From positions 1 to 64,000 of the IMG/VR virus record IMGVR_UViG_3300035698_010479: a stretch of DNA of 64,000 nucleotides, one strand, 5' to 3'. The translations under genes and the position numbers were made by a program. Under the pieces are notes generated by a model. It worked only from the letters and a program-made list of their open reading frames with translations. It did no database searches and had not been told where the DNA came from. The stretch's first letter is position 1. Every line of letters starts with the position of its first letter. This document shows, piece after piece, positions 58,644 to 63,373 of this stretch.

Positions 58644-59540
58644 ATGAAAGAAAAACAAAATGCAGATGTAGGCGTAGTAATTGGTCGTTTTCAAGTAGAC
58701 GATCTCCACGAAGGTCATCTAAATCTACTTTCTACAGTAGAACAATCACACAGTAGACTTATAATCTTTATAGGTTTATCTTCATGTAAATGTACTTATA
58801 ACAATCCACTTGACTTTGAGTCGAGGCGAGCTATGTTACAAATACATTATCCAAAAGCAACCATCCTTTACATTAAAGACGTACATGACGACCTGTTTTG
58901 GTCTAAAGATCTCGATAATAAAATATCAGGTTTATTAGGTCCTGGTCAGACAGTCTGTCTTTATGGTAGTAGAGATTCATTTATTCCCTATTATCATGGT
59001 AAACTACCAGTAAGAGAGCTTGTTCAAGAAACTTATTTCTCAGGTACGGAGGTTCGTAAACAAGTAGCTATTAGATCCAATTCTTCTAGAGACTTTAGAG
59101 CTGGTGCTATATGGGCGCTAGGTAATCAGTATCCTTCTCCTAATTTTACAATTGATGTCGCTATATTTGATGATAATTTCACTCGAATTCTTCTTGGAAG
59201 GAAAGTGAAAGAAACAAAATATAGACTGATAGGTGGCTTTATTCAAAACTCTGAGAAGATTTCTGATGCAGTCGCAAGAGAAGCACTGGAAGAAACTCAT
59301 CTAGTATTAAATAATATTAAATACATTGATAGCTTCCCTTCAACTGATTGGCGTTACCGTAGCGAAAGAGATAAGATTACCACCATACTTCATACAGCAA
59401 CAATAAAATCAGGTGTGCCTGAACCGGATGATGACATCCATGAACTTCGTTGGTTTGATTTTAACAACGATATACTAGATCTAATTGTCCCCGAACATCT
59501 TGATATGCTAACTGTATTACTAAAGCTGTCAAGAAGTTAA
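58644..59540 (+). CDS. bifunctional NMN adenylyltransferase / Nudix (ADP-ribose pyrophosphatase), NadM-Nudix/NatV-like
   Basis: IGRFQ...HEGH, NPL....R, SGTEVR; Nudix box GGF...E....AV.REALEET. Confidence 0.9.
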   Translation: MKEKQNADVGVVIGRFQVDDLHEGHLNLLSTVEQSHSRLIIFIGLSSCKCTYNNPLDFESRRAMLQIHYPKATILYIKDVHDDLFWSKDLDNKISGLLGPGQTVCLYGSRDSFIPYYHGKLPVRELVQETYFSGTEVRKQVAIRSNSSRDFRAGAIWALGNQYPSPNFTIDVAIFDDNFTRILLGRKVKETKYRLIGGFIQNSEKISDAVAREALEETHLVLNNIKYIDSFPSTDWRYRSERDKITTILHTATIKSGVPEPDDDIHELRWFDFNNDILDLIVPEHLDMLTVLLKLSRS

Positions 59541-59817
59541 CAATGTTATAGGAGGATTATGAAACAAATAAAAATAAAGGAAGTAGTACTACCAATAAAA
59601 GTACCATCAGGTAAATATTGTTGGGAGCATCATATATCTGGCACTTGTAATTATTTTGATAATGAAGGAGGACACTCTTCTTGTGAATTAAAATTTCACT
59701 GCCAAAAAGATACTAAGCAGGGTGTTTTAAAAGATCCAGCATGTGCGGCGTTAGTAGATGTCTTGATTATTGATAATATATCATAAATTATTTGTCTTCA
59801 TCCAAGGTACTTACTAA

Positions 59818-60009
59818 ATGAAAACATACAAAGAAAGAAAAGAAGAAAGAAAAAAGCAGTACGAAAAACATGAGTTCGGTTGGCGTTCCCGTAAGTGTGG
59901 TGCCTGTGATGGTGCCGGTTACTACGACTATAACGGTTCACCTCCTTGTGGTGCCTGTGAAGGTACAGGTAAGGAGAAGTATACAGGACCAAAAATCTCC
60001 ATTCTATGA
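59818..60009 (+). CDS. small DnaJ-type zinc-finger protein
   Basis: CGACDGAG ... CGACEGTG. Confidence 0.65.
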   Translation: MKTYKERKEERKKQYEKHEFGWRSRKCGACDGAGYYDYNGSPPCGACEGTGKEKYTGPKISIL

Positions 60010-60045
60010 CCCGAAAGATGTTATGGACTGGTAAATATTAATTTA

Positions 60046-60072
60046 TTCTTAGATGCGTTGATGCAAGGAGAA
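60046..60072 (+). promoter_or_regulatory. RBS-sequestering motif, copy 2 (before NAMPT)
   Basis: TTCTTAGATGCGTTGATGCAAGGAGAA; TTCTT can pair with AAGGA. Confidence 0.45.
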
Positions 60073-60077
60073 AAATT

Positions 60078-61409: not shown

Positions 61410-61981
61410 ATAATGTGTTGACGATACAAAATATCGTTAATTCAGAGGGCGCAGAAGGAAGTGTAATAAATGACAAGATTATATTGTACTTTGAGTGCCT
61501 GATGGTGTCGCCGAGGAGGTAAGCATTATGTGGGTCTGTCAAACCTTTATCTATGATACCGGCGATGCCGCATCTTATAGGAGTACTTATGGGATTTGCT
61601 GAAATTAAAAAGAAAGAAACACCATTACCACGTTATAAAAATACAGTTGTATGTCATAAATGTCACGCAGAATATAATAAAGATGTTCAATTTGTAAAAG
61701 GTATTACAGTATCTAGTAATACTGGTACTGACCTCGGTGACTTTATACCACTTGCTACAATAAGAATTGGTACTTGTCCTATGTGCTCAACAAGTGAAAA
61801 GATAACTTTATGAAAACAAAGACATCTAAGATATTAGAAACAGTTGATGTAATAGCCGGAAAAAGCTATCATCAGGGCACCTTTGCTAGCATTTCACATA
61901 AGTACCCTAGTGACTTTAGTAGAATGAGTAAAGAAATAAGTGAGCTACGTAAAAAGCTTGTTGATATGCTAGCAGATGAGT

Positions 61982-62011
61982 AATAATAATAATAATAATA
62001 ATAATAATAAT
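61982..62011 (+). repeat. (AAT)10 microsatellite
   Basis: Ten perfect AAT units right after ATG AGT. Confidence 0.85.
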
Positions 62012-62162
62012 ATCAAGTACTGGTCTCTAGAAGTTGTTGAGTTTAAAGTTAAACCACATAATAAAAGACCAAATTCAATATATAAGGACTCTAAAACATC
62101 AGGTCATATTACTAAATCAGGTGTTGGTATGGTAGGTAAACTAATTAAAAAAGGCTAATATT

Positions 62163-62912
62163 ATGCACTCACCGTTAAAATACTGTACTAAGGGTGTACC
62201 ACTACCAAATTATTTAATTGACGGACCAGAGCGTGTTTTAAACGTTTCTGAAGCTAATGTGGAAGTAGTTTACGGAGGTGATGGTTCAGTACTTCGTGGA
62301 GTACAAGGTATAGTAAAGAACAATGTACCAGACGTTCTAATACTTGGTATTAATACTGGACACGTTGGCTTCTTATCAAACGATATTAGTAAAGAACAAG
62401 CATTAGCTTTCCTTACCAATCCTAATGAGGCCCTTATTGAGAAGCGTAATATGTTACGTATAAGCAATAATGATACTGTATGGTATGCACTTAATGAAAT
62501 AGTAATTCAACCACTAAAAAGAGGACCATTATTTGAAACGCTGCTTAAAGTTGACAATGATGATTTAGTATATAAGGGAGATGGCTTGATAATTTCTACT
62601 CCTTCTGGTAGTACTGCTTATAATCTATCTGCTGGAGGACCTATTATACATCCAAGTACCAACGTGCTTGGTATTACACCTATATGCCCATTTTCTCTCG
62701 CTGCACGGCCTATTGTAGTACCGAATTCTGTAAAACTTCTTGTTAATACTTCTGCCGATGCTGAAATAACTATAGATGGTGTATCAGTGTTCGTTGGAGT
62801 ACTAAAGAATATGTCGATAGATCTTGCAGCATTTACTATAAATTTAGTTAAGTTTGACTCGTTTTTTGAGGCAATACATAATAAACTTGGGTGGAACTAC
62901 TCTATACGGTGA
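62163..62912 (+). CDS. nadK: NAD(+) kinase
   Basis: GGDGSVL, GINTG.VGFL, ALNE, GDGLIISTPSGSTAYNLSAGGP, PICP.SL..RP, IDG. Confidence 0.93.
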   Translation: MHSPLKYCTKGVPLPNYLIDGPERVLNVSEANVEVVYGGDGSVLRGVQGIVKNNVPDVLILGINTGHVGFLSNDISKEQALAFLTNPNEALIEKRNMLRISNNDTVWYALNEIVIQPLKRGPLFETLLKVDNDDLVYKGDGLIISTPSGSTAYNLSAGGPIIHPSTNVLGITPICPFSLAARPIVVPNSVKLLVNTSADAEITIDGVSVFVGVLKNMSIDLAAFTINLVKFDSFFEAIHNKLGWNYSIR

Positions 62913-62917
62913 CTAGT

Positions 62918-63373
62918 ATGATACAACTTATAAACGAAGATATTCTTGGTAACTTAGATACAAATAAACAAAAAACAATTATTCTTCATGGGTGTAATTG
63001 TTTCCACACAATGGGTTCTGGTATTGCTAAATACTTAAGAGCCAAATTTCCAAAGGTTTACACAGTAGATATTACTACTACTAAACGTGGTGATAAATCA
63101 AAGCTTGGTACTTTTAGTACAGCAATCATTGAGGATAGATTTGTAATACTTAATTGTTATACACAATTCAGATATGGTAGAGATAACATCCTGTATGCTA
63201 ACTATGCAGCTATAGAAAAATGTTTTAGACAGGTGGCTTTGCAGTATGATAATTCATGGGAAGTACGGCTTCCAAAAATAGGGTGCGGATTGGCAGGTGG
63301 TGATTGGAATATTGTAGGGCCATTGTTGATGATGCATTTAAACAATCATAGTACTAAAGTTTATTATAAGTAA
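62918..63373 (+). CDS. macro domain protein (ADP-ribose processing, TARG1/Poa1-like)
   Basis: HGCNCFHTMGSGIA, NCYTQ, PKIGCGLAGGDW. Confidence 0.9.
   Translation: MIQLINEDILGNLDTNKQKTIILHGCNCFHTMGSGIAKYLRAKFPKVYTVDITTTKRGDKSKLGTFSTAIIEDRFVILNCYTQFRYGRDNILYANYAAIEKCFRQVALQYDNSWEVRLPKIGCGLAGGDWNIVGPLLMMHLNNHSTKVYYK

Follow-up and report, generated by a model that had tools for sequence, protein, structure and literature searches.

The NAD gene cluster and its source

The stretch of DNA analyzed in this study (the window, 64,000 nucleotides) comprises bases 1-64000 of the IMG/VR virus record IMGVR_UViG_3300035698_010479, which is linear, 228,458 bp long and 86% complete according to CheckV. At positions 58644-63373 of the window is a cluster of genes for a NadM-type bifunctional protein with nicotinamide mononucleotide adenylyltransferase (NMNAT) and Nudix domains, a nicotinamide phosphoribosyltransferase (NadV/NAMPT), an NAD kinase (NadK) and a stand-alone macrodomain (Table 1). 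Profile matches placed all four on the plus strand, in agreement with a preliminary description of this DNA that had named the same genes at the same positions. Judged by the sequences of its products, the cluster is most likely a rare variant of NARP2, one of the known phage routes for NAD+ reconstitution, with an additional NadK step and, in this genome, a ribose-phosphate diphosphokinase (Prs), that makes NADP+.

Table 1. Genes and open reading frames (ORFs) of the NAD gene cluster and its surroundings (window coordinates)
Feature	Coordinates	Strand	Length and remarks
NadM-type NMNAT-Nudix	58644..59540	+	298 aa; NMNAT at residues ~8-140, Nudix at ~165-290
Nicotinamide phosphoribosyltransferase (NadV/NAMPT)	60078..61409	+	443 aa, full length
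NAD kinase (NadK/PpnK, short N-terminal type)	62163..62912	+	249 aa; both Pfam NAD-kinase domains
Stand-alone macrodomain (TARG1/DarG/SCO6735/Poa1p class)	62918..63373	+	151 aa; alternative GTG start at 62891
SpoT/RelA-type HD_4 hydrolase domain protein	56905..57435	+	176 aa; Pfam HD_4 44.1 bits, TIGR00691 spoT_relA N-terminal match
HDIG-type HD phosphohydrolase	57741..58460	+	239 aa; Pfam HD 46.8 bits, TIGR00277 HDIG
Small ORF	59559..59786	+	75 aa; no family match
Small ORF	59818..60009	+	63 aa; tandem 48-nt repeat (59885-59983)
Three small ORFs between NAMPT and NadK	61553..62158	+	86, 57 and 60 aa; no family match

The source of the window is a large uncultured tailed phage from a salt lake. 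The G+C content stays between 31 and 39% along the whole genome, the long ORFs of the first 64 kb are all on the plus strand, eight tRNA genes lie between 42.7 and 54.1 kb, and a terminase-like ORF is found near 209 kb of the genome. A search of sequencing runs through their DNA contigs found near-identical sequence only in salt-lake metagenome runs, and the 4.7-kb stretch had no megablast match among cultured phages, where the phage has no near relative. Three salt-lake runs gave contigs that align to the stretch with no differences. These contigs are short, of low depth and possibly from the source samples, and are not independent support for the contiguity of the stretch. The same gene order was, however, found again in related contigs of other samples (L003/L011, L006 and L007). 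Thus, the arrangement is not an accident of assembly.

NAMPT and NMNAT-Nudix

The NAMPT matched the Pfam domains NAMPT_N (67.6 bits) and NAPRTase (153.7 bits), scored 513 bits against NF006629, whose cut-off is 405 bits, and matched phrog_448 with an E-value of 9.6e-136. Its identities to annotated phage NadV genes ranged from 43 to 51%. The enzyme is predicted to make nicotinamide mononucleotide (NMN) from nicotinamide and phosphoribosyl pyrophosphate (PRPP). In a sister phage (contigs L006/L007, 5360-7491), the corresponding position is taken by a NAMPT of only 36% identity, whereas NadM-Nudix is 81% and NadK 62% identical, and the NAMPT gene is followed by one for a GIY-YIG/NUMOD3 homing endonuclease. 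The NAMPT of that phage looks like an in-place replacement by a distant homologue.

The NMNAT-Nudix gene lies 0.5 kb upstream of the NAMPT gene. Its product scored 50.4 bits for Pfam NUDIX and 18.6 bits for the cytidylyltransferase-like domain, which is under the 21-bit cut-off, and only 47 bits against NCBIfam equivalogs with cut-offs of 354-449. The closest solved structures, 2qjt of Francisella tularensis and 2qjo of Synechocystis, were matched across both domains, with an E-value of 8.5e-12 for the single sequence and with E-values of 2.9e-20 (2qjt) and 8.8e-17 (2qjo) for the family profile. The translation contains HEGH at residues 22-25 and SGTEVR at residues 133-138. The Nudix box GGFIQNSEKISDAVAREALEETHL at residues 188-210, for which the consensus is GX5EX7REUXEEXGU, retains all glutamates, and its penultimate glycine is replaced by histidine. 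The NadM half is predicted to make NAD+ from NMN and ATP, and cleavage of ADP-ribose (ADPR) or NAD(H) is the activity that other NadM-Nudix enzymes suggest for the Nudix half. The assignment of the two genes to the NARP2 type, which is that of Vibrio phage KVP40, in the preliminary description was supported by the NAMPT domain matches, the NMNAT motifs and the matches to 2qjt and 2qjo.

NAD kinase

The NadK scored 83.9 bits for Pfam NAD_kinase_C (PF20143), for which the cut-off is 23.7, and 27.5 bits for NAD_kinase (PF01513), for which the gathering cut-off is 25.5. NAD kinases (EC 2.7.1.23) transfer a phosphoryl group to the adenosine 2'-OH of NAD+ or NADH and are characterized by a GGDG motif, an NE/D motif and the glycine-rich motif GxGxxxSTPxGSTAYxxSxGGP. 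In the phage protein these are GGDG at residues 38-41, NE at residues 111-112 and the glycine-rich GDGLIISTPSGSTAYNLSAGGP at residues 139-160, and they align position by position with those of the Yersinia and Salmonella NadKs. Moreover, G39, D40, G41, N111, G139, D140, G141 and G149-N154 were invariant over 33 viral homologues whose identities ranged from 35 to 73%, which indicates purifying selection on the catalysis of NadK.

The AlphaFold2 model of NadK, built on the alignment of viral homologues, had a mean predicted local distance difference test (pLDDT) score of 94.7. The top 40 Foldseek matches of this model were all NAD(H) kinases with template modeling (TM) scores of up to 0.80, and the first was the Thermotoga maritima NadK 1yt5 with a TM score of 0.77. 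The N-terminal domain is short, with GGDG starting at residue 38 rather than at about 68. As solved compact NadKs share this short N-terminus, it is not a truncation. By its sequence, NadK is a divergent member of the family that probably converts NAD+ (or NADH) to NADP+ (or NADPH).

It could also be that the NadK homologue has changed its substrate and phosphorylates either an ADPR-derived molecule (a TIR signal such as glycocyclic ADPR (gcADPR), or ADPR itself) or nicotinic acid adenine dinucleotide (NaAD), and so inactivates signals or diverts the pathway together with the macrodomain and the Nudix domain. Its divergence below the equivalog cut-offs, its position beside two ADPR-processing domains and the presence in the region of other candidate host-takeover genes, encoding the SpoT-like HD protein, the HDIG protein, Ro60 and RNA ligases, would fit such a role. 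All motifs of the NAD site are kept, however, and do not vary within the viral clade, the fold agrees with that of NadK throughout, the adjacency of NadK and the macrodomain is limited to the lineage of the window and nothing points to another substrate. A changed substrate is thus improbable.

Lineages of virus-encoded NAD kinases

A word-indexed protein search with NadK ranked about 45 short homologues above ordinary cellular NadKs. Their lengths were 209-296 amino acid residues, mostly 240-270, and their identities 34-73%. In a maximum-likelihood tree of 124 sequences, the short NadKs, which have GGDG at residue ~30-45, formed a 53-row clade with a Shimodaira-Hasegawa-like approximate likelihood ratio test (SH-aLRT) support of 91. 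The genomic contexts of 12 homologues of this clade were looked up. Together with the window, 13 of 13 contexts were phage-like, with dense small ORFs and phage replication or repair genes, on contigs of up to 307 kb.

An IMG/VR search with the single NadK protein confirmed nothing, while an alignment-based scan of IMG/VR did give matches. Most of these were partial and at contig ends, and were taken as probable host flanks and left out of the counts. Two viral contexts, L012/13 and L014, were added by the scan. Both also contain genes for a family-B DNA polymerase and an RNA ligase; the NadKs of L012 and L014 fall in a different, cellular-type clade (SH-aLRT 99). A third, very divergent NadK lineage is represented by the cultured Sinorhizobium jumbo phage Phosso (469 kb). 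Among cultured phages, NadK matches were found in 32 of 50,697 records, of which about one is a true case. The others look like host flanks of prophages, unannotated fecal contigs and bacterial contigs filed as phage. For instance, Acinetobacter phage MD-2021a (CAKLQH020000004.1, L034) seemed to give the best match to NadK among phages and was rejected, because the context is that of a bacterial chromosome (mrcB, ppnK, trpD and pheA). Bacterial contigs of MD-2021a inflate the counts of phage-encoded NadK.

Matches of this kind raise the alternative that NadK is a passenger without a role in the phage, i.e., a recently captured host gene, host flank or product of chimeric assembly. Most NadK matches in the phage database are indeed such cases, including the flanks of Escherichia coli and Salmonella prophages and MD-2021a, and many of the IMG/VR matches are at contig ends. 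The NadK studied here lies, however, well within a viral contig of 228 kb, at 62 kb, and its local G+C content is that of the genome. It is syntenic with NadKs of 58-62% identity in sister phages from other samples, and it belongs to a deep clade that was sampled on virus-like contigs only and whose catalytic residues are conserved. We therefore consider a passenger gene or an artefact very improbable.

Association of NadK with NAD salvage genes

Among 16 viral NadK contexts, NAMPT was found within 10 kb of NadK in 10 (window, L003, L006, L009, L036, L012/13, L014, L120, L121 and L122). NadM-Nudix was also present in nine of these ten, and the exception, L120, is a contig of 9.8 kb. The window, L003, L006 and L122 have the order NadM-NAMPT-NadK; L036, L121 and L009 have tight cassettes of the order NadM-NadK-NAMPT; and in L120 NAMPT is followed by three ORFs and then NadK. 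The arrangements of L012 and L014 are looser, and in L014 a PRPP synthetase gene lies between those of NAMPT and NadK. In Phosso, the annotated NAD kinase gene is 5.5 kb from genes for PnuC and NMNAT, which are of the NARP3 type, and its NAMPT gene is elsewhere in the genome. At least three NadK lineages that were acquired separately thus show linkage to NAD salvage genes.

By a rough estimate, two genes of a ~200-kb genome are within 10 kb of each other about one time in ten, and a published survey of viral NAD-ADPr systems found NadV in about a third of jumbo phages. Chance co-location would therefore be expected in a few per cent of cases, compared with the 10 of 16 observed. The persistence of this proximity through rearrangements argues for selection, and we take the recurrent placement to reflect selection for passing rebuilt NAD+ on to NADP(H).

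The association was also counted from the opposite side, for genes within 10 kb of 82 IMG/VR NadM-Nudix loci with identities of 38-80%. NAMPT was present at 74 of these loci, the macrodomain family at 19, Prs at 19 and NadK at one, which belongs to a sister phage. Hence the position of nadK beside phage salvage genes, to which the preliminary description had drawn attention, is common when viral NadKs are taken as the starting point and exceptional when NadM-Nudix loci are. NadK is a rare addition to NARP2, and a virus that owns NadK usually has its gene in or beside the NAD salvage genes.

Macrodomain

The macrodomain matched Pfam Macro with 22.1 bits, for which the cut-off is 22 bits, and phrog_335 with an E-value of 2e-48. 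ATG at 62918 is the likelier start, since it is six nucleotides past the NadK stop codon and gives the 146-155 amino acid residues typical of the homologues. A profile of 31 homologues matched BT1257 (2.9e-21), SCO6735, Poa1p, TARG1 and DarG. Similarly, the AlphaFold2 model (pLDDT of 91.7) matched 2fg1 (BT1257) first, with a TM score of 0.86, followed by Poa1p, SCO6735, TARG1 and DarG. Lys62 is invariant in the family. The protein is a putative ADPR-binding hydrolase, whose substrates could be ADP-ribosyl groups on DNA or protein, ADPR-1''-phosphate, or ADPR-derived signals. Two more specific roles were considered and rejected. As an orthologue of the antitoxin DarG, the protein scored only 26.5 bits against NF048014, for which the cut-off is 250 bits, and no DarT was found nearby. 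Clearance of ADPR-1''-phosphate left by a phage Tpt1/KptA step is a pairing that the phage does not encode, as its genome contains no Tpt1, and a host enzyme could supply that substrate.

The preliminary description had regarded the macrodomain as a special extension of the set. The counts do not support this view: besides the 19 of 82 NadM-Nudix loci mentioned above, the family was present in 2,931 phage records, and a published survey reported that 56% of jumbo phages have macro domains. The macrodomain gene lies within a few kb downstream of the NAMPT gene, and often adjoins it, in about nine distinct IMG/VR arrangements. Thus, the macrodomain is a frequent companion of NARP2 and ordinary for this neighborhood. 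In the lineage of the window, NadK lies between NAMPT and the macrodomain. The adjacency of NadK and the macrodomain is confined to this lineage and is absent in L009, L036, L012, L014, L120, L121 and L122.

Proposed route to NADP+ and its possible benefits

The preliminary description missed a canonical PRPP synthetase gene, which completes the route. This Prs (313 amino acid residues) is encoded outside the window at genome positions 71637-72578 (L119 637-1578), on the minus strand and ~9 kb downstream of the set. It scores as canonical (370 bits, for a cut-off of 297 bits) and is ~10 kb from, and on the strand opposite to, NAMPT. In L014 and L122, too, Prs lies within the cluster or next to it, and with Prs-like genes within 10 kb of 19 of the 82 NadM-Nudix loci, a gene for PRPP supply is a common companion of NARP2. 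With Prs included, the phage is predicted to encode every step from ribose-5-phosphate and nicotinamide to NADP+.

In the proposed route, Prs would convert ribose-5-phosphate to PRPP, from which NAMPT would make NMN with nicotinamide; NadM would adenylate NMN to NAD+, and NadK would convert part of the rebuilt NAD+ to NADP+. The Nudix half would split ADPR into AMP and ribose-5-phosphate, the latter feeding Prs, and the macrodomain would release ADPR from adducts or derivatives. The infected cell would thereby keep both pyridine-nucleotide pools when those of the host are destroyed or insufficient. NARP2 is reported to overproduce NAD+ and to consume PRPP (10.1101/2024.02.11.579819), so a phage Prs upstream and a phage NadK downstream of it make sense. 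We favor, with moderate confidence, the reading that NadK is a coupled extension of the phage NAD+ supply and that the whole is an NAD(P)+ supply module.

Several results weigh against this reading. Five of the 16 viral NadK contexts (L004/5, L008, L010, L035 and the P0099 contig) had no NAMPT in the 8-10 kb scanned, so NadK is also kept without close linkage, and the single NadK among 82 NadM-Nudix loci means that the NadK step is dispensable for the function of NARP2. The phages of the short-NadK clade share much gene content (for instance, the identities between the window and L122 are 62% for Prs and 39% for the HD protein); part of the linkage is thus shared ancestry, and several of the cases are not independent. 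The NadK itself is under every NCBIfam NadK equivalog cut-off, with a best score of 152.9 against 309. Finally, no RNA run in the sequencing-run search contained the stretch, and a scan of 53.5-64 kb found promoters and terminators in numbers no higher than shuffled sequence would give, so that operon boundaries and co-transcription were not supported.

Two benefits of an NAD(P)+ supply module, which are not exclusive of each other, are possible: resistance to NAD(P)+-degrading immunity, and NADPH for dihydrofolate reductase (DHFR) and for deoxynucleotide (dNTP) synthesis linked to ribonucleotide reductase (RNR) of the phage. Users of NADPH are present in the genome, with DHFR at 119826-120248 and the RNR large subunit at 109-112 kb. 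No match to PF04973 (PnuC) was found in the 228-kb record (86% complete), from which ThyX, Tpt1/KptA, NADAR and NAD-dependent DNA ligase were also absent. The proposal of the preliminary description that the kinase extends the set to NADP(H) was sustained in part. Its motifs are intact and its linkage recurs, as a functional extension predicts; the purpose that was attached to it, rescue from NAD(P)+-depleting defences, is matched by an equally good reason, dNTP supply, since the phage encodes RNR and the NADPH-dependent DHFR.

NadK may instead be a general metabolic booster, i.e., an auxiliary metabolic gene (AMG) that raises NADPH for phage deoxynucleotide synthesis and is not concerned with defence. 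NADPH would serve DHFR directly and RNR via thioredoxin or glutaredoxin, and perhaps the reductive activation of two downstream radical S-adenosylmethionine (radical-SAM) enzymes, and the position beside the salvage genes would reflect a shared precursor alone. This explanation is supported by the phage-encoded DHFR and RNR large subunit, by the two radical-SAM genes after the macrodomain gene, by the retention of NadK in five viral contexts without a nearby NAMPT, and by the literature, in which ppnK occurs just as an item in lists of viral AMGs, without defence context. On the other hand, a true phage NadK is very rare, whereas DHFR and RNR are often found in large phages, so that demand for NADPH alone does not explain when NadK is acquired, and NadK is linked to NAD rebuilding specifically by having repeatedly been inserted between the two NARP2 genes or next to them. 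The explanation also overlaps with the NAD(P)+ supply module, which is compatible with either benefit. We regard it as possible but rather unlikely. Even if NadK serves only dNTP synthesis, these genes constitute the first well-supported clade of virus-encoded NAD kinases.

More tentatively, NARP2 with NadK and Prs may be a distinct counter-defence pathway in which nicotinamide and ribose-5-phosphate are used to restore both NAD+ and NADP+. NADP+ is also degraded by some immune effectors, for example by TIR-type NAD(P)ases like the ones in short-Argonaute SPARTA systems. A pathway of this kind would have been selected in large environmental phages as some effectors degrade NADP+ or as the host NadK cannot refill NADP(H) while the NAD+ pool that it draws on collapses, and NadK would decide whether NARP2 rescues the infection against NADP+-degrading systems. 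We put this forward as a possibility, albeit a doubtful one. Should phages rebuild NADP+ as well, NADP(H) would be a contested resource in abortive-infection immunity, and there would be a counter-measure to match the defences that cleave NADP+. The work on NARP1, NARP2 and NARP3 measured NAD+ and NADH alone, and the concrete set of four genes for Prs, NAMPT, NadM-Nudix and NadK makes the question of NADP+ rebuilding directly testable.

Neighboring genes and other features of the genome

The gene of the HDIG protein is directly upstream of that of NadM-Nudix. A copy with 73% identity is found in L006, and a homologue with 39% identity is found in the distant phage contig L122, four genes (~1.5 kb) upstream of NadM-Nudix; a paralogue is at genome positions 74114-74827. 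The HDIG protein is a possible accessory of the NAD set. Copies of the SpoT/RelA-type HD_4 protein that are 58-59% identical occupy the same position in the sister phages L003 and L006.

Four or five small ORFs are interspersed among the enzyme genes, of which only 61976-62158 is conserved in a sister phage, where its homologue also lies ahead of NadK (50% identity to L003 5526-5687). The ORF at 59559-59786 has a 53% identical copy in L010, a contig with NadK but without NAMPT nearby. The repeat within the ORF at 59818-60009 codes for two Cys-x-x-Cys-x-Gly-x-Gly-like (CxxCxGxG-like) motifs, and its product is probably a small zinc-finger protein.

Directly past the macrodomain gene, at genome positions 63960-68474 (L002 60-4574), are two genes for radical-SAM proteins, one for a DUF7768 protein and two for RNA ligases, of which one has a PHA02142 OB-fold. 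A tRNA nucleotidyltransferase is encoded at 10741-12069 of the window, and together with these genes it suggests an RNA-repair set. An RNA ligase is also found near NadK in L009, L012 and L014. At 35125-39282 of the window, a glutamine amidotransferase-like, a COOH-NH2 ligase-like and a RimK/S6-glutaminyl-transferase-like protein are encoded in a run. The distant contig L009 also has genes of the first two kinds close to the NadK cluster, and in L122 a RimK-family gene lies close to it.

A gene for a Ro60 protein with TROVE and von Willebrand factor A (vWA) domains is at 54316-55761 of the window. It is flanked by a four-copy repeat module of ~80 nucleotides (53451-53504, 54103-54180, 54217-54285 and 57480-57531). 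Near it are two tRNA-like elements (53562-53708 and 57448-57576) with intact acceptor, D and T arms, in which an insert of ~71-76 nucleotides replaces the anticodon arm. YrlA-type Y RNAs are tRNA mimics that bind Ro60. The two elements look like such Y RNAs, the alternative being intron-bearing tRNAs. The tRNA-rich region also contains an Rfam match to a group I catalytic intron at 50469-50707 (65.6 bits, for a gathering score of 50 bits). Two proteins of ~220 amino acid residues, encoded at 47688-48350 and 49358-50014, carry a PEP-CTERM sorting motif at their C-termini (31 and 29 bits in Pfam). The motif is a signal of Gram-negative bacteria with exosortase; its presence in a phage is unusual and may hint at the host.

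Comparison with known systems

Similar to NARP2 of KVP40 (NadV/NatV), the salt-lake phage combines a NAMPT-family phosphoribosyltransferase and a bifunctional NMNAT-Nudix protein in one gene cluster, and the chemistry expected for both is the conversion of nicotinamide and PRPP into NMN and of this into NAD+. Different from NARP2, the salt-lake phage continues the string of genes with those of NAD kinase and a macrodomain and also has a canonical Prs in the genome, and its proteins are ~40-50% identical to annotated phage NadV genes. The published NARP2 pathway ends at NAD+, and its description mentions neither NADP nor a kinase (10.1101/2024.02.11.579819). The NARP3 paper likewise mentions neither NADP nor NAD kinase, its sole kinase being ribosyl-nicotinamide kinase (PMC13464706), and the survey of viral NAD-ADPr systems refers to NADP just as a general metabolite or as a substrate of NADases and never to NAD kinase. 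No NAD kinase was thus found in the NARP1/NARP2 preprint, the NARP3 paper or this survey, consistent with the earlier suggestion that the kinase lies outside the known NARP2-type route. A literature search found nothing relevant on phage nadK with nadV or on NAD kinase in anti-defence, and as its coverage of subscription journals was limited, a prior description is possible.

NARP1, which consists of Adps and Namat, was not matched, because the Prs-like gene is canonical rather than a divergent Adps and does not adjoin NAMPT. The NAMPT may thus be of the PRPP-preferring Nampt clade and not of the Namat clade that goes with Adps; its pairing with an NMNAT and the canonical score of the only Prs-like gene are indirect hints of this. 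NARP3, which consists of PnuC and NadR (PMC13464706), is another phage route for rebuilding NAD+; the salt-lake genome is without PnuC and has NAMPT instead of uptake of nicotinamide riboside.

Individual proteins of the set also have known counterparts. The NadM-Nudix proteins of F. tularensis (2qjt) and Synechocystis (2qjo) have the same two-domain layout, and the HxGH and SxTxxR motifs and the Nudix-box glutamates are kept in the phage enzyme, which is, however, very divergent and has a two-residue insert in the GRFQ..H motif. The macrodomain is of the same class, by profile and fold, as TARG1, DarG, SCO6735 and Poa1p and as the DarG-like counter-defence macrodomains of phages, which reverse the ADP-ribosylation of DNA by DarT (PMC11481870, PMC13309987). 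In contrast to the latter, it is not a DarG orthologue, and BT1257, the protein of nearest structure, is uncharacterized. The compact NadKs of T. maritima (1yt5), Listeria monocytogenes (NadK1) and Archaeoglobus fulgidus (1suw) share with the phage NadK the fold, the catalytic motifs and a similar length, with ~35-45 residues before GGDG. Different from these bacterial and archaeal enzymes, the phage NadK is virus-encoded, belongs to a separate clade of short sequences and is ~30% identical to any solved NadK. Finally, the Phosso locus shows that NadK is paired with NAD salvage also where the salvage chemistry differs.

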